Sequence record: MZ444140.1
Length of the DNA: 64,000 nt
Direction: 5' to 3' (one strand)
The notes beneath the pieces were generated by a model that was not told where the DNA came from, did not search any database, and saw only the letters and a program-made list of their open reading frames with translations. The position numbers and the translations under genes were made by a program. Of the stretch, positions 2,481 through 58,534 are shown piece after piece; within the stretch, counting starts at the first letter, position 1, and each line of letters opens with the position of its first letter.

Positions 2481-3014
2481 TTAACTTTCTAGATAACGGA
2501 TAGTCCCATTTTCTAGATAACGTGCTGCGCCATTCTCTAATAGCCGGATAGTATCCGATGTATCATCAATACGTTGAATTAGTATATTACATTCACCATA
2601 GTAAGCATAACTACTCGACATAGCTACTATCGTGTATGGAACAACATCCGTAGTTGCATTGATTGGTGTTGTATCAAATGAAACATCATCTGGTCCAAGC
2701 TTCCAACCCCGTGAACGGTTGATTTCTTCAGCAATTGCTTTAGGTGTTAAAGTACCAACTATCTTAAGGATAGATCCTTCACCAATAGCTCGTGGATCAG
2801 CAAAATCTAACCGACGGTAAGTTAACATGTACTTAATGTCAGTAGTAATGTCGATCATTTCAATAAATGTACGTCCAGGCTCAATCGTGGTTGGACTAAA
2901 AAACATATCTTCAAATGTAACTGTTTCTGGTTTGAAGTTTATTTTTAAATCATCCCGCGCAAGTTTTACTAGCGCGTCCCTCGATGCCATGTCATACGGA
3001 AAGATATCCTGCAT
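2481..3014 (-). CDS. Virion/tail-associated protein (gp143 equivalent) with C-terminal RxLENG repeats
   Basis: 177 aa; YRRLDF motif shared with the gp126/127-like ORFs; ends IRLLENGAARYLENGTIRYLES. Confidence 0.75.
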   Translation of the reverse strand: MQDIFPYDMASRDALVKLARDDLKINFKPETVTFEDMFFSPTTIEPGRTFIEMIDITTDIKYMLTYRRLDFADPRAIGEGSILKIVGTLTPKAIAEEINRSRGWKLGPDDVSFDTTPINATTDVVPYTIVAMSSSYAYYGECNILIQRIDDTSDTIRLLENGAARYLENGTIRYLES

Positions 3015-3061
3015 GTCAAACCTCTATAGTGGTAAAATGTTTAATCCACATAGCATTATAA

Positions 3062-3086
3062 AGCCTTCCTCTTCAAGAGGAAGGCT
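3062..3086 (-). terminator. Intrinsic terminator hairpin
   Basis: AGCCTTCCTC-TTCAA-GAGGAAGGCT perfect 10-bp stem with AT-rich flanks. Confidence 0.8.
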
Positions 3087-3096
3087 ATTATAGTTT

Positions 3097-3492
3097 TTAT
3101 TGCATAAGCATCTTTATTAATTCAAAGGTACCTTGCACAATAGTCTTTAACACATTGGCACTTTCTTCTGACATAGGTGCACCAGATAAAACCACCATAG
3201 TAGATACTGATGCCCCAATAAGAGTAACACCACCAGCTAATACTAATACCGCATTACGGTAAGAATCTTTAGCCTTCACTTCAGCAATTTCCCGGCTGAG
3301 AATTTTATATTGAAGATCTGAATCGGTAATAGCATAAATTCGACTAAGTACTTCTTCACCAGTTATACTTAGATTTATACGTTGTTCCTTTTCCAATACA
3401 CTATTTAAATAGGTACGTATCTTCTTTCCATAGTCTTTAGAAGAAGATAAAGGATTACCATCGATCTCAATCAGAACGTCCTCTAGGGTCAT
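3097..3492 (-). CDS. Membrane protein, holin candidate (gp142 equivalent)
   Basis: Start moved to ATG 3492 (GGAG RBS); hydrophobic helix AVLVLAGGVTLIGASVSTMVVLSG then an amphipathic C-terminus; lies between spanins and endolysin. The holin role is inference. Confidence 0.55.
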   Translation of the reverse strand: MTLEDVLIEIDGNPLSSSKDYGKKIRTYLNSVLEKEQRINLSITGEEVLSRIYAITDSDLQYKILSREIAEVKAKDSYRNAVLVLAGGVTLIGASVSTMVVLSGAPMSEESANVLKTIVQGTFELIKMLMQ

Positions 3493-3829
3493 GACTATTC
3501 TCCAAATTACGTTGACGTTCGTTCCATTCACGCAATTTGTCTACTTGGATATTACATAGTCCAAGTGCATCAGTTTGTAAAAGCCAATGTTCGGTCATAA
3601 GTAAGAAACGTGCTTCATTCTCATCAGTAACCCCAACAGCTTTATATCTATCTAATGCATTGATGATCTCATTAGCTGTAGGTGGGGCTTCTACATCACA
3701 AGGGAGAAGCAAACTACTTGGGATTGCAACTGGTATTTTCACGGGAGGCGGCACAGTAGTGCTCGTACATCCGTTTAGCAATAACATTAATAGACTTATT
3801 AATGCTATCTTTTTTTGTGTCAGTTTCAT
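3467..3829 (-). CDS. o-spanin (Rz1-like outer-membrane lipoprotein)
   Basis: From ATG 3829: MKLTQKKIALISLLMLLLNG-C lipobox, Pro-rich linker (VPPPVKIPVAIPSSLLLPC), helical C-terminus with Cys (LGLCNIQVDKLREW); overlaps the 3' end of the i-spanin. Confidence 0.8.
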   Translation of the reverse strand: MKLTQKKIALISLLMLLLNGCTSTTVPPPVKIPVAIPSSLLLPCDVEAPPTANEIINALDRYKAVGVTDENEARFLLMTEHWLLQTDALGLCNIQVDKLREWNERQRNLENSHDPRGRSD

Positions 3830-4220
3830 GTTTAATCTCAGTAGTGGTACTTTCCCCATTAGTTGTTTTAGCTTTAACCTCAGGCCATACAGGGGGAGTA
3901 TATCCACGACCTGATAAACTAATGTACTCATCAATCACCTCAGTGCGTGATTGCGCCTGCTCTTTTTGTATCTCTTTCTTTTTAGTAATTAGTTCAGCTT
4001 GAATTTTATCGGAGATACGGTCTGATTCAATCCTAACCTTTTCTGCCGCTTCATAAGATTTAATTTTTCCAATTAAATCTGTAGAGCGAACAAGTTCCGT
4101 CTCATAACTATTTTTGTAATATATGATACCAATTAAGGCACCTATCAGAATAACTAATAGTAACCATATATGCAATGGCACACTACCAATTATTTTTCGT
4201 ATACCTGCTAATAGGAACAT
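3714..4220 (-). CDS. i-spanin (Rz-like) (gp141 equivalent)
   Basis: N-terminal TM (IWLLLVILIGALIGIIYY), coiled-coil periplasmic region, two C-terminal Cys; partly overlapped by the lipoprotein gene. Confidence 0.75.
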   Translation of the reverse strand: MFLLAGIRKIIGSVPLHIWLLLVILIGALIGIIYYKNSYETELVRSTDLIGKIKSYEAAEKVRIESDRISDKIQAELITKKKEIQKEQAQSRTEVIDEYISLSGRGYTPPVWPEVKAKTTNGESTTTEIKHETDTKKDSINKSINVIAKRMYEHYCAASRENTSCNPK

Positions 4221-20554: not shown

Positions 20555-21430
<876 letters not shown>

Positions 21431-21438
21431 GGTGTGTA

Positions 21439-21882
21439 ATGGCTGATACAAGAGCTGAATTAGTAGCTGCTTGGAATGTGGCTAATAAACCTAAAGATAA
21501 TAATGGTAAGCCTAGGGATTTAACTGTTGATGATGTTGAATTTATAGGGACTGATACATTCTTAGCAACTGGTACAAATGCCAAAACAACAATGAGAGCG
21601 AAGACCAGTTCACTTTATTTTAAAGGTGAGACAGTTATTTACTTTAATAGACGCTCTTTACCAGAGTACTGTCTTGGTATAAAAGTACCGGGTAAACCAA
21701 CTGACTATACTGATAATTTAGAAGTAGCTGAAAAATTAAGAGATGTTTACGGTATTCCATTTATTATAGATGAGATACAACCGCAACCTATTACTGGGAA
21801 TACGGTTACGATACATCCATACTTTAATAACTTGTCGTGGATACCAACAATACCAGTAACTCTTGAATTTGAAAGTAGTTAA
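21439..21882 (+). CDS. Virion/tail-associated protein (gp126 equivalent)
   Basis: 147 aa; GAGGTG RBS; YFNRRSL motif weakly paralogous to gp127/gp143. Confidence 0.6.
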   Translation: MADTRAELVAAWNVANKPKDNNGKPRDLTVDDVEFIGTDTFLATGTNAKTTMRAKTSSLYFKGETVIYFNRRSLPEYCLGIKVPGKPTDYTDNLEVAEKLRDVYGIPFIIDEIQPQPITGNTVTIHPYFNNLSWIPTIPVTLEFESS

Positions 21883-26502: not shown

Positions 26503-27585
26503 CTAAACTTTTGGCAAAATTAAATCCATCAGTGAACCTACAATTTTAATGGATGATACTAGATCAGAGGCAATGGAGTTTAGATCACCCCATTTTAGAC
26601 CATGAATCAATACAACATCTTTTGGTTTGAATTCTTTATCAAACGTACCAGCTGCTTTTTCCTGGGCTTCCCTTTCCTTAATATCAGCTGCTGTTAAGAG
26701 TGCAGTCTTAAGACGTTCAATAACTTTCTTATCTTTAATTCCAACCATTGCAGCAGCTTCTTCATGTGTTCTAAAGAAACCATTTTCATGGAACTGTTCA
26801 GGAGGTATTACATATCTCTTTTCGCCATTATGACTAATACATCCATGTTTACCACGGATATTAACAATAAGACCAGGATCTAATGATGGATTGTAGATTG
26901 ACTCAATGGCCATAATTCTGCCAGCCATTACATAAAACAATTTATCTGGTTTATTGATGTCAGTATTATACGTTAAAGAATATGTTTCATTCCATACTTG
27001 ATTAGAAAGTGCTTCTTCTTCTGGACTAAGTCCGCTGTAACCAGGAGGACTAATATTTCTATTTGGATAAAATTCAAAATACTGACTATACTCAGTTTTA
27101 AATACTTGGATACCTAAACTCTGAATCCAACCACCATGATACTGATCTACTAGTTTTGATAAGTCAATTGAATACCAAATAGTAATCTCAGATAACTGGT
27201 TATTAAACTGATCGAATGTCTGTCGACTAAATGACTGAATATATTCTAACATTTCCTCAGGTGTAAAACCTGGAATAGATTTAGCCATAACTTCATAGTT
27301 AAAACTATCATCACCACTCCATCGGTAAATGACCTTAACTACCAGTCTATTAGACATTACATACTTACGGGATGTCCCAATATTGATAGCGTGACCAGAC
27401 GAATCAACTACAGTAATACGATGAAATGATTCATTCCGATACTCAACAAAACGTGAGACAGGGAGATTCCAATTAGCGTATGGATCACCCTTAGTGTATG
27501 CAGTTCCCGATTTCTTATCATACGGGTGATCGATAGTAGGCTTAACTGATACTTGAGTAAGCCCCGCAATTTTTAGTGTTACCAT
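26503..27585 (-). CDS. Hypothetical protein (gp122 equivalent)
   Basis: 360-aa intact ORF. Confidence 0.7.
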   Translation of the reverse strand: MVTLKIAGLTQVSVKPTIDHPYDKKSGTAYTKGDPYANWNLPVSRFVEYRNESFHRITVVDSSGHAINIGTSRKYVMSNRLVVKVIYRWSGDDSFNYEVMAKSIPGFTPEEMLEYIQSFSRQTFDQFNNQLSEITIWYSIDLSKLVDQYHGGWIQSLGIQVFKTEYSQYFEFYPNRNISPPGYSGLSPEEEALSNQVWNETYSLTYNTDINKPDKLFYVMAGRIMAIESIYNPSLDPGLIVNIRGKHGCISHNGEKRYVIPPEQFHENGFFRTHEEAAAMVGIKDKKVIERLKTALLTAADIKEREAQEKAAGTFDKEFKPKDVVLIHGLKWGDLNSIASDLVSSIKIVGSLMDLILPKV

Positions 27586-28054: not shown

Positions 28055-28080
28055 CTTTTTTTAATGTAATACAACATAAA

Positions 28081-28100
28081 GCCCTCCCCGAAGGGAGGGC
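28081..28100 (-). terminator. MCP transcript terminator
   Basis: GCCCTCCC-TTCG-GGGAGGGC followed by TTTATGTTG on the minus strand. Confidence 0.85.
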
Positions 28101-28112
28101 CTATGTCTGTTA

Positions 28113-28190
28113 CTATTCTAACTTCCGGGCATTACCGTCTTCCAAATAACGGATAGTCCCATTTTCTAGATAACGGTAACCCTTTCCAGC
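28113..28190 (-). other. In-frame 25-codon extension after the MCP TGA stop (putative readthrough segment)
   Basis: TGA GCT GGA AAG GGT TAC CGT TAT CTA GAA AAT GGG ACT ATC CGT TAT TTG GAA GAC GGT AAT GCC CGG AAG TTA GAA TAG TAA = AGKGYRYLENGTIRYLEDGNARKLE; same motif as the gp143 C-terminus. Confidence 0.7.
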
Positions 28191-30434
28191 TCACGGCTTA
28201 AGATCAGCAAGCTTACCGTTGAACTGAGTTTCACCCATGACTTTCTGGAAGCCAGTGATCTTGAACTCTAGCGCGAACGGAATGTTGTTGACGTGTAGGT
28301 TGAACGGAATGGCCGCGATTTCGCGAGTAACCTGGTGACCACCACGAGTGATCGGTAGGTCAGCGATAACAGTAGATACGTAGAAGAACTGACCCCAGGA
28401 GAGGATGTCGTTTTCTTGTTGTACTGCGCGGGTCGGAATTACAACTAGCTTACCATCAAATAGCTGGTTGTTGGTGGAAACGATATCGTACTTGAGATAA
28501 GCACCTAGAGTACGGTCGTCACCTTTAGTCATTAGATAGTTAGCAATCTCTTTGTCGGAGCAGAAGAGATACATCGGAGTTTCATCCTGGTTACCGGAGA
28601 TAACACGGAAGGCAGCTTCAATGTTGGAATCACGGTGAGCCGGGAATAGCTCAGCTTTAACACAGTTTAGGATCGCAGCGCAAACGTCGTCCCAACGATC
28701 TTTAGACTTGATGGTGTCGATGACTTTCTCAAGATCTAGTTCTTTGTAACGATAGGTCGGACGCATTACAGCGGATAGTGCACCTTCGATGATACCAAAC
28801 TTCGGACGGTTGTAACCATTGTGTACAACTTCACGTAGTTGAGCAAGGTAGTTAAGCATGCGCTTAACAGCGTTGTTGCTGTTACGGATGTTGGTGTTAA
28901 CAGTTAGAGCTTTAACAACCTCACCCGGACCTTCATCGGTCATGGTGTCCATCGGTAGAGTTACAGGAGCGTGCATCGGGATCGGATGACGGAACTGTAG
29001 CGCACGGGTCTGTAGTAGGTGACCACGCTGACGACGGTTAGTGTTGGTGAAGCGAGTGTCTAGTTCGAAACCGATAACCGCTAGGTCAGTTAGCTGATCT
29101 AGAATAGCTTTAACAGCCGGGTCAGCATTATCCATTACCTGACCATCTTCGTTTAGAACTTTATCGACGTAAGTGTCGGTAGCACCAAACTTAGAATCGC
29201 CTTTGGATAGGCTGATTGTACCACCAAAACCAACGCTTAGACGTAGGCTTAGTTTAGCGGTCTTAAGATCATTGATAACACCGTCAGCTGAACCATCGAT
29301 GAAAGTGGTATCGCCACTAACAACTAGATCGTCGCTATCGAAACGGATAACAGCGTTCCGGGTATCACCAACTAGATCGGGCTGGAACACAGCGCGAGGT
29401 AGACGGTCAACCTTGAACTTAACAACTTTACCACCGAGTAGAACGAATAGGTTCTTTAGACGACCAGCCGGATCAATGGTGTCAGAAACTTCAAGCATGC
29501 CACGCTGGATGAGTAGGTTAGCATTGGAGTTACCCATTAGATCAAGACGTACGTTCGCTTTTAGCGGAGCAGTAGTGATAGTTAGGTTCTGCTCGTTCTT
29601 GATGGTGTACGGAGGAACAAGAGCCGGGTCTACGAAGAAATCAGCATTGGAGCCAGCCGGATCTAGGGCAGGAATTAGCGCAATGCTTTCGTCGTCGAGG
29701 ATGGAAGGATCACGATAGGCTTCTACCATGTTCACTTCTTCATTATCCATCTTAACGCCGGATACTTCGTGGTAAACGTCTTTCATTACAGCGATGTAAG
29801 GAAGAACCTGAACAACACCACCTTCAATCGGGTTGATAACGGTGGTCGGATAAATACGCTCAGCGAATTCATCTTGACGGCTAGCAGCTAGGTTATAACC
29901 AATAGTTACAACACGGAAATCACGCTGTGACTTCTCGTTATAGTTCTCTAGGCCAACACCATTTTCGAATACTTGAATGCCACCAGCAGGGCCATTGAAC
30001 TGATGCTGTACAACCTTAACATGATCTTCATTAGAAGCTTTAGCTTTGGTAATACCACGTAGTGCACGGATATATTTAGTTTCATCAGCACAGGCGATAG
30101 CAGCCATGGTAGCAGCAGTGATTTGGTTCTCACGGACACGTTCTTCACGAGCACGTACTTGAGGATCACTGGAACTTACTCGTTCGAAACCATAGTCGTT
30201 AACGAGCATTTGCATTTTGTTATAAATTGCAGCGGCATCTTGAATGTCGGTAGCTTGCACGGTACCGAAGTTTTCATGTGAAATGCTGCTAATAAGGGAA
30301 CGACCTTGACTAACAACGCTGTCATTTAGACCAATTTCACTTTCTAGGCGGCCAATGAAATCTTCCATTGAGAAGACTTCGTAATTCTTTTCGCCTTTGT
30401 GTTTAAACAGTTCTCTTAGGGCATGTACGCTCAT
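28191..30434 (-). CDS. gp120: Major capsid protein (phiKZ gp120 ortholog)
   Basis: 747 aa; strong codon bias; prohead-protease-type site VGLE|NYNE; length and position match phiKZ gp120. Confidence 0.93.
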   Translation of the reverse strand: MSVHALRELFKHKGEKNYEVFSMEDFIGRLESEIGLNDSVVSQGRSLISSISHENFGTVQATDIQDAAAIYNKMQMLVNDYGFERVSSSDPQVRAREERVRENQITAATMAAIACADETKYIRALRGITKAKASNEDHVKVVQHQFNGPAGGIQVFENGVGLENYNEKSQRDFRVVTIGYNLAASRQDEFAERIYPTTVINPIEGGVVQVLPYIAVMKDVYHEVSGVKMDNEEVNMVEAYRDPSILDDESIALIPALDPAGSNADFFVDPALVPPYTIKNEQNLTITTAPLKANVRLDLMGNSNANLLIQRGMLEVSDTIDPAGRLKNLFVLLGGKVVKFKVDRLPRAVFQPDLVGDTRNAVIRFDSDDLVVSGDTTFIDGSADGVINDLKTAKLSLRLSVGFGGTISLSKGDSKFGATDTYVDKVLNEDGQVMDNADPAVKAILDQLTDLAVIGFELDTRFTNTNRRQRGHLLQTRALQFRHPIPMHAPVTLPMDTMTDEGPGEVVKALTVNTNIRNSNNAVKRMLNYLAQLREVVHNGYNRPKFGIIEGALSAVMRPTYRYKELDLEKVIDTIKSKDRWDDVCAAILNCVKAELFPAHRDSNIEAAFRVISGNQDETPMYLFCSDKEIANYLMTKGDDRTLGAYLKYDIVSTNNQLFDGKLVVIPTRAVQQENDILSWGQFFYVSTVIADLPITRGGHQVTREIAAIPFNLHVNNIPFALEFKITGFQKVMGETQFNGKLADLKP

Positions 30435-57059: not shown

Positions 57060-57590
57060 TCAGTCCTTATCTATTACTTCTACAGATCCAAATAGTAGAT
57101 GTAGGGTATACATTAGATCATTCATACCGTTTTTGTGTTTAACCCAATTCTGGATCATTGAAACAGTATCTAGATCTAATTTTAACTCATTAAAGAGAGT
57201 AGCAATTTCAGCGCGCGGTTCAATGAGTTGTGCACCAGCATCTGGTTCAGTAGCTAGTAACATTGGCCATTGGGTAATTGAAATACGTCGATGACCCGTA
57301 GCAATGTATCGAACAGTATCTAATAGGAATTGATAATTATAACTATCAATATTACTATTATTGTCCTGTAGAATAAACCAATTATAGTTTCCGCTAAAAA
57401 GACGAATAGCACAAGCTAGAACTTTCTTATGGAATTCCCAATATGCAGTTTGTGCAGGAAAGTTGGTAAAGATAAGATATAGTTCTTCAACTTGAGGATC
57501 ACCGGGACGAGCAGTGAACCGTGAAATGGCCTGTTGTTGACCACCTGAGTAATTACGACCAAATGGGCGTACAGCATTAGTTGCTGGCAT
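57060..57590 (-). CDS. Minor head protein (gp91 equivalent)
   Basis: Start probably 57590 (GGAGGG RBS); alternative coupled start at 57605. Confidence 0.65.
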   Translation of the reverse strand: MPATNAVRPFGRNYSGGQQQAISRFTARPGDPQVEELYLIFTNFPAQTAYWEFHKKVLACAIRLFSGNYNWFILQDNNSNIDSYNYQFLLDTVRYIATGHRRISITQWPMLLATEPDAGAQLIEPRAEIATLFNELKLDLDTVSMIQNWVKHKNGMNDLMYTLHLLFGSVEVIDKD

Positions 57591-57604
57591 ATCAATGCCC
57601 TCCA

Positions 57605-58534
57605 TTAGTGACCAAGAGATAGTAGATCACGATGGTTAGCAAAGAACTCAGATGCGCGATCTTGGATCATACCTAGGCGATAGTTATAATCAGAGATACG
57701 AATTTCATACTCTTTAATAAGCTTCTGTAGGCGTGCATCCACTTTACCATTACTTTGCATTTCCCGCATTTCTTGTAAACGTAGTTGAAGTGCAAGGAAT
57801 TCTTGCTCAGCTTCTTTAAAACGTTCAACCTGATACTCAGCTAAGAACTTGCCAAATAGCACGAACGGGTTCTGACGAGGTGAGAAGCCATCCATGTTAA
57901 GTGGATCACGTTGAGCTATAGAGAGAGCACTCACAGCTACATCATAAGTACCTTCATTGACTTCAGCACTAGATGCACGACTTAAGCGTTGTTTCAGTTC
58001 ATTAGTCTTAAGACTCATTGCTGGATACAGAGTAATGAATTGCGCCATATTAGTGTATAGCCATTCTTTCTCAGCACGAGATGATTTTAATTCTGTAGCC
58101 TTACCTAATTTCATTGCTTCTTGTGCAATTAGATTTAGTAGTAGTTTACGGCCATAACGAATATAGAAACTAAGACCATCAACAAAACGTAACATGTTTG
58201 CACGGTCAAAGGTTAGATTAGAGTTAGTAAACTGAATAGCAAATAAACGCCGGATTTCGCTTTCGATCATATCAAAGCTACCACGAATATTTGAAAGAGT
58301 ATCCAGTACTAGTTTAATCGGTTCAGTATTAAAACTAATCGCTCGCCGTAGTTCAGTAGATAACCGCATACCTAAATCTGATTTAAGTTGCATATTACCA
58401 AATACTTCACCTACATCGTCAATAATTGGTGCGAGAGTTGCATCATATTCTTCACGTAATGAACGGATTTGATTTAATAGTTCACGACGTTCAGTAACTG
58501 GTGCGAGTTCACGTACATAATCAATAATTCTCAT
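57605..58534 (-). CDS. Inner head protein (gp90 equivalent)
   Basis: ~309 aa helical protein; AAGGA RBS; gene order matches phiKZ. Confidence 0.7.
   Translation of the reverse strand: MRIIDYVRELAPVTERRELLNQIRSLREEYDATLAPIIDDVGEVFGNMQLKSDLGMRLSTELRRAISFNTEPIKLVLDTLSNIRGSFDMIESEIRRLFAIQFTNSNLTFDRANMLRFVDGLSFYIRYGRKLLLNLIAQEAMKLGKATELKSSRAEKEWLYTNMAQFITLYPAMSLKTNELKQRLSRASSAEVNEGTYDVAVSALSIAQRDPLNMDGFSPRQNPFVLFGKFLAEYQVERFKEAEQEFLALQLRLQEMREMQSNGKVDARLQKLIKEYEIRISDYNYRLGMIQDRASEFFANHRDLLSLGH

Follow-up and report, generated by a model that had tools for sequence, protein, structure and literature searches.

A conserved in-frame extension behind the major capsid gene of phiKZ-type phages and its likeness to the gp143 C-terminal tail

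The major capsid gene (gp120) of a phiKZ-type jumbo phage is followed, behind its UGA stop codon, by a short conserved stretch in the capsid frame whose product would resemble the C-terminal tail of gp143, a small protein encoded beside the endolysin. We consider selected read-through of this UGA, which would extend the capsid protein by a mimic of the gp143/gp23-family tail, to be the best explanation, and we give it a probability of roughly 0.6. A minority of capsid subunits would then probably carry a docking tag. PhiKZ serves as the model for nucleus-forming jumbo phages and is a candidate for therapy. Structures of the capsid and of the entire virion are available; the conserved stretch is nevertheless unannotated in the sequence records we compared and unmentioned in the literature we searched. 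If translated, it would be an additional example of stop-codon read-through, in this instance for the major capsid protein of a large dsDNA phage, and it would define a portable peptide-domain pair made up of a DUF7941 tail and an N-terminal domain. It would also provide numerous sites on the capsid where the roughly 2500 DUF7941 copies that are unplaced in each Goslar virion could be anchored, and it would connect a product of the capsid gene with a lysis-tuning protein.

We analyzed 64,000 nucleotides of record MZ444140.1 (hereafter the window), which come from a phiKZ-type Pseudomonas aeruginosa jumbo phage and run in reverse orientation to the phiKZ reference. The features discussed are listed in Table 1. 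The extension is closed by TAG TAA at 28110-28115; other phiKZ-type records read GAG TAA there, a harmless length polymorphism that adds one Glu. TGA ends 7 of the 45 long ORFs (16%) in this AT-rich window. Behind the other TGA-ended ORFs, the frame runs on for two or three codons or, in one case, into the next gene. Two minus-strand ORFs (57060-57605, ending in TGA, and 26503-27585, ending in TAG) have the next gene in the same frame, which is probably mere adjacency. The 25-residue peptide of the window matched no Pfam family, even at an E value of 10, and lacks an Ig-like domain.

Table 1. Positions in the window of the features discussed in the text.
Feature	Position	Strand	Remarks
gp144, endolysin, 260 aa	1637..2419	-	downstream neighbor of gp143; endolysin/transglycosylase in matching records
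gp143, short DUF7941/phrog_2935 protein, 177 aa	2481..3014	-	globular N-terminal part and C-terminal tail; directly upstream of the endolysin gene
gp143 C-terminal tail, last 22 residues	2484..2549	-	R-x-L-E-N-G-x-x twice, then R-x-L-E-x and stop
30-nt repeat, copy A	2493..2522		indicated gene-conversion patch in gp143
gp127, full-length DUF7941 paralogue	20558..21430	+	Pfam DUF7941 96.9 bits; PDB 9xqd chain PHIKZ127; baseplate periphery
gp126, DUF7941 paralogue, N-terminal domain only	21439..21882	+	Pfam DUF7941 38.9 bits; phrog_2935 E 2.5e-35; candidate tag-binding module
Terminator hairpin	28079..28102	-	just 3' of the extension stop codons
Post-stop extension, 25 codons, capsid frame	28116..28190	-	Gly-rich linker and three R-x-L-E-type units
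30-nt repeat, copy B	28146..28175		post-stop capsid site; probable conversion donor
gp120, major capsid protein, 747 aa	28191..30434	-	TGA stop at 28191-28193

The repeat unit of the extension occurs at one other locus. A six-frame scan of the window found R-x-L-E-[ND]-G only in the gp143 tail and in the post-stop capsid stretch, and the same two loci alone emerged when a whole phiKZ-type genome was scanned in pieces. Searches with tblastn likewise returned two matching places per phiKZ-type record. Among the 182 stop-to-stop segments of the window, an unbiased scan ranked gp143 as the best match to the capsid extension, with a score of 63 against 33 for the next segment and a median of 18. 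A preliminary description of this DNA had placed the repeat in the 3' tail of the capsid protein. The codons are indeed in the capsid frame, but they lie outside the capsid ORF, beyond its TGA. The same description had assigned a tag to a tail-associated protein and to a minority of capsid subunits. What stands of this is a protein-level module common to gp143 and the post-stop extension, which only a minority of subunits could acquire; the label "tail-associated" for gp143 is not supported.

The extension is conserved among relatives. A capsid-pattern scan of IMG/VR gave 29 loci. With the window and Viktualia counted in, 21 loci carry an extension, and these yield 20 non-redundant extension sequences (the window, PhiPA3, Viktualia and 17 further IMG/VR contigs). 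In all 20, TGA is followed by 24-30 capsid-frame codons of the same architecture; the capsid proteins of the relatives are 56-69% identical to that of the window, and their last residues differ. The first Arg, Glu and Gly of the repeat are each present in 20/20 sequences, the second Arg and Glu in 19/20 and the second Gly in 20/20. A tblastn search with the 25 residues recovered the stretch, in frame and behind the stop, from PhiPA3, PA1C-type phages and Viktualia; from Phabio and Noxifer it recovered the gp143-homologue tails. The preliminary description had proposed a search of related jumbo phages for such repeats, and this search uncovered both post-stop and C-terminal tags. Eight more distant contigs in our first survey have a capsid gene that ends in TAA and lacks the extension. 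Where there is an extension, the terminator comes after it and not after the first stop. We observed a GC-rich hairpin followed by CTTTATG within 5-25 nt of every extension (in the window and in loci L005-L031). Its stems have changed yet remain paired among relatives, which points to a conserved phiKZ-type terminator. In Viktualia (L005, PV037725), an annotated 32-aa CDS at 2978-3076 spans the capsid stop in a different frame; this CDS looks spurious because the relatives conserve the capsid frame.

We assigned gp143 to the DUF7941 family. Its C-terminal end agrees with the one given in the preliminary description, as confirmed by translating the ORF. The protein matched phrog_2935 over the whole profile (E 2e-45). 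Its score against Pfam DUF7941 (PF25613) was 18.3 bits, below the cut-off of 27, and its Phabio and Noxifer homologues scored 28.8 and 37; precomputed PF25613 assignments exist for many gp143 homologues. An AF2 model (pLDDT 87) comprises a globular part, residues 1-149, and a tail with a pLDDT of 69-79 in which beta bridges flank each Arg. When this model was searched with Foldseek, the top match was the N-terminal domain of phiKZ gp127 (9xqd_0, E 2.3e-6, TM 0.59/0.68), and the next match had an E value of 0.065. When the gp143 family profile was run against solved structures, weak matches to a phage "triplex" protein and to gp127 came back, and otherwise only chance matches to a human kinase. 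The three repeat units form the C-terminal end of 53/53 gp143 homologues (34-98% identity), and 5 of the 14 invariant columns of the family fall in the tail. The endolysin neighborhood of gp143 recurs in Phabio, Noxifer and Goslar. The DUF7941 N-terminal module itself is very widespread: a search at E <= 0.001 gave 1553 cluster representatives. Some proteins carry it in tandem, as many as 23 matched stretches being present in one of them, and it also stands at the N-terminus of proteins longer than 1000 aa. P0112, one of the matches, has 2709 aa.

Published work describes gp143 as a cytoplasmic, non-essential lysis regulator that acts through the N-terminus of the holin (PMC12894885). It alters the time of holin triggering and can block a truncated holin, and AlphaFold 3 puts its first globular domain on the holin N-terminus (PMC12894885). 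Several gp143 homologues are labeled "virion structural protein" in their source records. In the text of the phiKZ structural atlas, gp143 is absent, and gp127 is the only DUF7941 paralogue placed. A role of gp143 as a tail or tail-fiber protein is thus not supported; the "tail fiber" labels in some matching records belong to a neighboring gene or are unverified.

Goslar provides an independent replicate of the pairing. Its capsid gene, too, is closed by TGA; 28 codons in the same frame come next, and then a stop and a terminator. The encoded peptide is unrelated to the phiKZ extension. We searched 50 kb in six frames for the 7-residue core of the Goslar extension and found one other site, the C-terminal tail of gp23. 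This protein is a phrog_2935 homologue of gp143 and adjoins the endolysin. It also ranked first among 237 segments compared with the Goslar extension, scoring 55 against 40 for the next, and no part of the gp23 family is better conserved than this tail, in members as low as 44% identity. With the Goslar extension as the query, tblastn returned its own capsid site only. Because the motif is unrelated and the pairing of extension and tail is the same, the capsid extension and the short DUF7941 tail appear to have changed together, with complete replacement of the motif between the two genera.

These findings suggest how the extension might act. A ribosome would occasionally pass the capsid UGA, by read-through that is programmed or at least selected. 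Most gp120 would stop at residue 747, and a minority would gain a flexible Gly-rich linker and three R-x-L-E-[DN]-G-type units. The tagged subunits could then serve as anchor points for gp143-type DUF7941 modules or as competitors for them. We derive this role from two points: the tag has the architecture of the gp143 tail, and the DUF7941 proteins of Goslar are predicted by AlphaFold 3 to polymerize head to tail, each protomer docking its tail or linker on its neighbor's N-terminal domain (bioRxiv 10.64898/2026.04.21.720040). Filaments of gp22 formed in vitro were seen by electron microscopy in the same study. By this analogy, we infer that the DUF7941 N-terminal domain is the likeliest partner of the tag. 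The preliminary description had named the N-termini of gp145 and gp146 as possible partners, for which our analysis offers no support; the DUF7941 domain is the better candidate.

The extension would be exposed on the capsid. In the published phiKZ capsid, the C-terminal arm of gp120 (728-747) is modeled to its last residue, and at the pentons this arm reaches the junction of two external gp244 molecules. In addition, C-terminal GFP fusions of the Goslar capsid protein localize as capsids do in infected cells. The arm-gp244 contact and the behavior of these fusions both argue for exposure. A capsid has 1615-1620 copies of its major protein, so that tens of them would bear a tag if read-through reached one or a few per cent. 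The Goslar virion contains about 2140 copies of gp23 and about 580 of gp22, neither of which has been placed in the model (bioRxiv 10.64898/2026.04.21.720040). We tentatively entertain the idea, which we hold to be possible rather than likely, that sparse tagged subunits, in a number set by read-through, seed or anchor an abundant DUF7941 "fiber cloud" on the capsid, beyond the six baseplate sites. Through the action of gp143 on the holin, this peptide-domain contact could also let the timing of lysis respond to how much capsid has been assembled.

The tag might instead be translated and bind a different common partner, such as the holin gp142 through its cytoplasmic domain, the capsid lattice itself or, as an adhesin, a structure on the host surface. 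The effect of gp143 on holin triggering and the modeled contact between its first globular domain and the holin N-terminus would fit a holin partner, which, if true, would link capsid supply to lysis timing. That published contact also counts against docking as we propose it, since the known partner of the gp143 N-terminal part is the holin and not a tail peptide (PMC12894885). Moreover, gp143-type tails persist in genomes without a capsid extension, and the copy number of gp23 (about 2140) is near that of the capsid protein (1615). Against a different partner, the published holin contact is made by the globular part of gp143 and not by its tail, the tail or linker of Goslar gp22/gp23 is predicted to dock on the next N-terminal domain, and no ordered extra peptide has been reported on the outer capsid surface. 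We therefore judge a different partner to be unlikely, while taking it seriously. Suggestions that the tag is a degron or a prohead-protease site found no supporting match.

Returning to read-through, we asked how the extension could be expressed. The codon in front of it is TGA in each of the 20 R-x-x-E-[DN]-G-type loci, as it is in Goslar and in the 12 loci that form a third motif class, described below. A or G follows the stop in 21/21 loci, and the final codon of the capsid gene specifies Pro, Ala, Gly or Val. The extension frame contains no start codon, and the first post-stop codons are never starts; those starts that overlap the stop lead into another frame, which is not conserved. A suppressor tRNA was found neither in the window nor in a whole phiKZ-type genome, whose five tRNAs are those for Leu, Pro, Met, Asp and Thr. 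At E <= 1, Rfam returned only chance-level matches to unrelated families. The sole shared RNA feature is a hairpin of 5 bp that lies 17-20 nt past the UGA and has a covariation term of -0.41. Given the lack of a start codon, a suppressor tRNA, an Rfam family and any structure beyond this hairpin, occasional UGA read-through would be the simplest route. Two observations count against it. We found no strong RNA structure of the kind that stimulates read-through, and TAA precedes a motif-bearing extension in three exceptional relatives (L064, L065 and L070). TAA is generally a tighter stop than TGA. In L064 and L065, the extension behind TAA (2977-3024) has 16 codons and carries a V-x-D-L-x-G-F motif.

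Expression by another route, namely a suppressor tRNA, selenocysteine insertion or re-initiation to give a separate small peptide, could account for the three relatives with TAA and could give a role to the small hairpin after the UGA. The absence of a suppressor tRNA from both window and genome speaks against the first of these. The hairpin has five pairs with almost no covariation, and together with the lack of an Rfam match this weakens any RNA-directed route; selenocysteine insertion in particular found no support, with neither an Rfam SECIS match nor a conserved hairpin adjoining the stop. The post-stop codons, none of which is a start, and the unconserved frame opened by the stop-overlapping starts disfavor re-initiation. 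Taken together, these results make a route other than UGA read-through improbable.

The codon-level record indicates whether the stretch is translated at all. Within the extension, the mean pairwise differences at codon positions 1, 2 and 3 are 0.38, 0.35 and 0.49. Differences between codon pairs were synonymous in 1237 cases and non-synonymous in 2316, so that one third are synonymous; in a control, the unaligned stretch beyond the second stop, the counts were 230 and 4273 (5% synonymous). The extension is also better conserved than the last 25 capsid codons when the two are compared ungapped from the stop. Within the window, the three units use differing Leu and Arg codons. In two metagenomic relatives (L058 and L070), the frame beyond the stop encodes an Ig-like domain that passes the Pfam threshold for Big_2. 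In L058, which is the same contig as L022, an in-frame capsid extension of 203 codons at 3346-3954 includes the Big_2 domain. The 95-codon extension of L070 (2986-3270), which stands behind TAA, contains Big_2 and ends in three R-x-x-E-D-G-type units. The excess of changes at the third position, the synonymous share, the column shares and the Big_2 domains are those of a downstream zero-frame ORF under purifying selection. By these measures, the 25 codons after the capsid TGA behave as real coding sequence.

The stretch could in principle be untranslated, either as an RNA or DNA element of the 3' UTR or as a relic of a longer ancestral capsid protein, with its likeness to gp143 produced by recombination alone. 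None of the matched records annotates the extension, the published gp120 models end at residue 747, which counts against an extended form, and recombination between the two loci does happen (see below). Against this, peptide, frame, length and stop codon are all kept from genus to genus even though the DNA has diverged, with most variation at third codon positions. The Big_2 domains at the same place in relatives, the recurrence of the same pairing in Goslar with an unrelated motif, and the lack of a conserved RNA structure likewise run against it. We regard this explanation as highly improbable and retain a translated, selected extension as our reading.

The two loci of the window are also related at the DNA level. 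The preliminary description had reported an exact identity of 30 nt that encodes the same peptide at both places, and had proposed recent copying or gene conversion between them. Our analysis bears out both points. The 30-mer has exactly two copies in the 64-kb window, both of which encode R-Y-L-E-N-G-T-I-R-Y on the minus strand; there are no near copies at up to 3 mismatches in the window, and the chance expectation from 100 shuffles is 0. At the capsid site, the 30-mer is present in 47/47 phiKZ-type records, so that the tract is fixed there. In gp143 it is polymorphic among close relatives, occurring in 9/47 records and missing from the phiKZ reference. The alternative gp143 allele has 4 base differences clustered in 2 adjacent codons, and otherwise has 17 + 9 bases in common with the capsid site. 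The clustering of these differences and the contrast between 47/47 and 9/47 records indicate a short conversion patch, with the capsid extension as donor and gp143 as recipient, in the sub-lineage of the window. The conversion is a recent, local event that is secondary to an ancient shared module: the identity of the DNA is a local episode, whereas both tags are ancient and conserved across genera. An assembly artifact or a chance repeat peculiar to this isolate is a negligible prospect, as no copies are expected by chance and independent records hold the repeat at the capsid site (47) and in gp143 (9).

Motif classes differ among phages, and their distribution is uneven. The third extension class consists of TGA and then 18 codons with a V-x-D-L-x-G-F core, found in 12 IMG/VR contigs and Burkholderia phage FLC9. 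Similar tails occur on short metagenomic DUF7941 proteins. A tblastn search with the 20-aa third-class extension returned its own capsid site only, and no motif partner was found in the 76 kb around the FLC9 capsid gene. In FLC9, two short DUF7941 proteins and the extension agree by a loose L-x-G-[FL]-x-Y pattern, which was unranked and non-significant in an unbiased scan. These two short genes stand in tandem with a long DUF7941 gene (L142, 888-2927), far from the capsid gene, whereas the counterparts in phiKZ, Phabio, Noxifer and Goslar lie beside the endolysin. Within the R-x-x-E-D-G clade, tag and tail from the same genome were no more alike than those from different genomes (15 pairs, permutation p = 0.91). 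Six contigs keep a gp143-type tail and have no capsid extension, which argues that the tail has a function of its own. We rejected the possibility that the extension is universal among chimalliviruses: SPN3US (in which the capsid gene ends TAA TAA), Xoo-sp14, Deimos-Minion and many IMG/VR contigs have no recognizable extension. As far as these genomes indicate, the capsid extension is thus widespread but patchy.

We compared the proposed extension with known recoded capsid genes. In phage Qbeta, the UGA that closes the coat gene is leaky: a few per cent of ribosomes add a C-terminal extension, which gives protein A1. The likeness lies in a minority of capsid subunits that bear an extra exposed module. 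Qbeta is a small ssRNA phage whose extension is a large folded domain, whereas here a 280-kb dsDNA jumbo phage has a predicted extension of 25 residues. Unlike A1, this extension would copy the tail of another virion or lysis protein. Frameshift-extended capsid proteins are known from T7 (10B), T3, Lactobacillus phage A2 and the Listeria phages A118, A500 and PSA (PMC5009743). These phages likewise recode the 3' end of the capsid gene and make two products, the minor one C-terminally extended. Several of them add an Ig-like domain, as do L070 and L058; the addition in the window is a short repeat peptide. The T7-type cases depend on a -1 or +1 frameshift, whereas the present extension lies in the zero frame behind a stop. 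The literature we searched holds no mention of an extension or of read-through for phiKZ or phage capsid genes, and it contains no phiKZ ribosome-profiling study.

A second comparison concerns the chimallivirus filament proteins of the DUF7941 family (PF25613, phrog_2935), which include Goslar gp22 and gp23 and phiKZ gp126 and gp127. Membership in this family extends to gp143. Its tail takes the place of the "disordered linker" of Goslar gp23, and in both protein families conservation is strongest in the tail. The Goslar preprint mentions no capsid-gene extension or stop recoding and assumes anchoring at the six baseplate sites. A capsid-borne copy of the DUF7941 tail is new here.

Finally, gp143 has been discussed beside the antiholins RI and RIII of T4 and LydB of P1 (PMC12894885), which it resembles in changing the time of holin triggering and in its ability to block a truncated holin. 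None of our searches found a sequence relation of gp143 to T4 RI, T4 RIII or P1 LydB. To our knowledge, no antiholin has a C-terminal module in common with a capsid-gene extension. Between the gp143 stop and the endolysin start (2420-2480), we observed a hairpin, AACCCAG ... CTGGGTT, which may mark a transcript boundary inside the lysis cassette.
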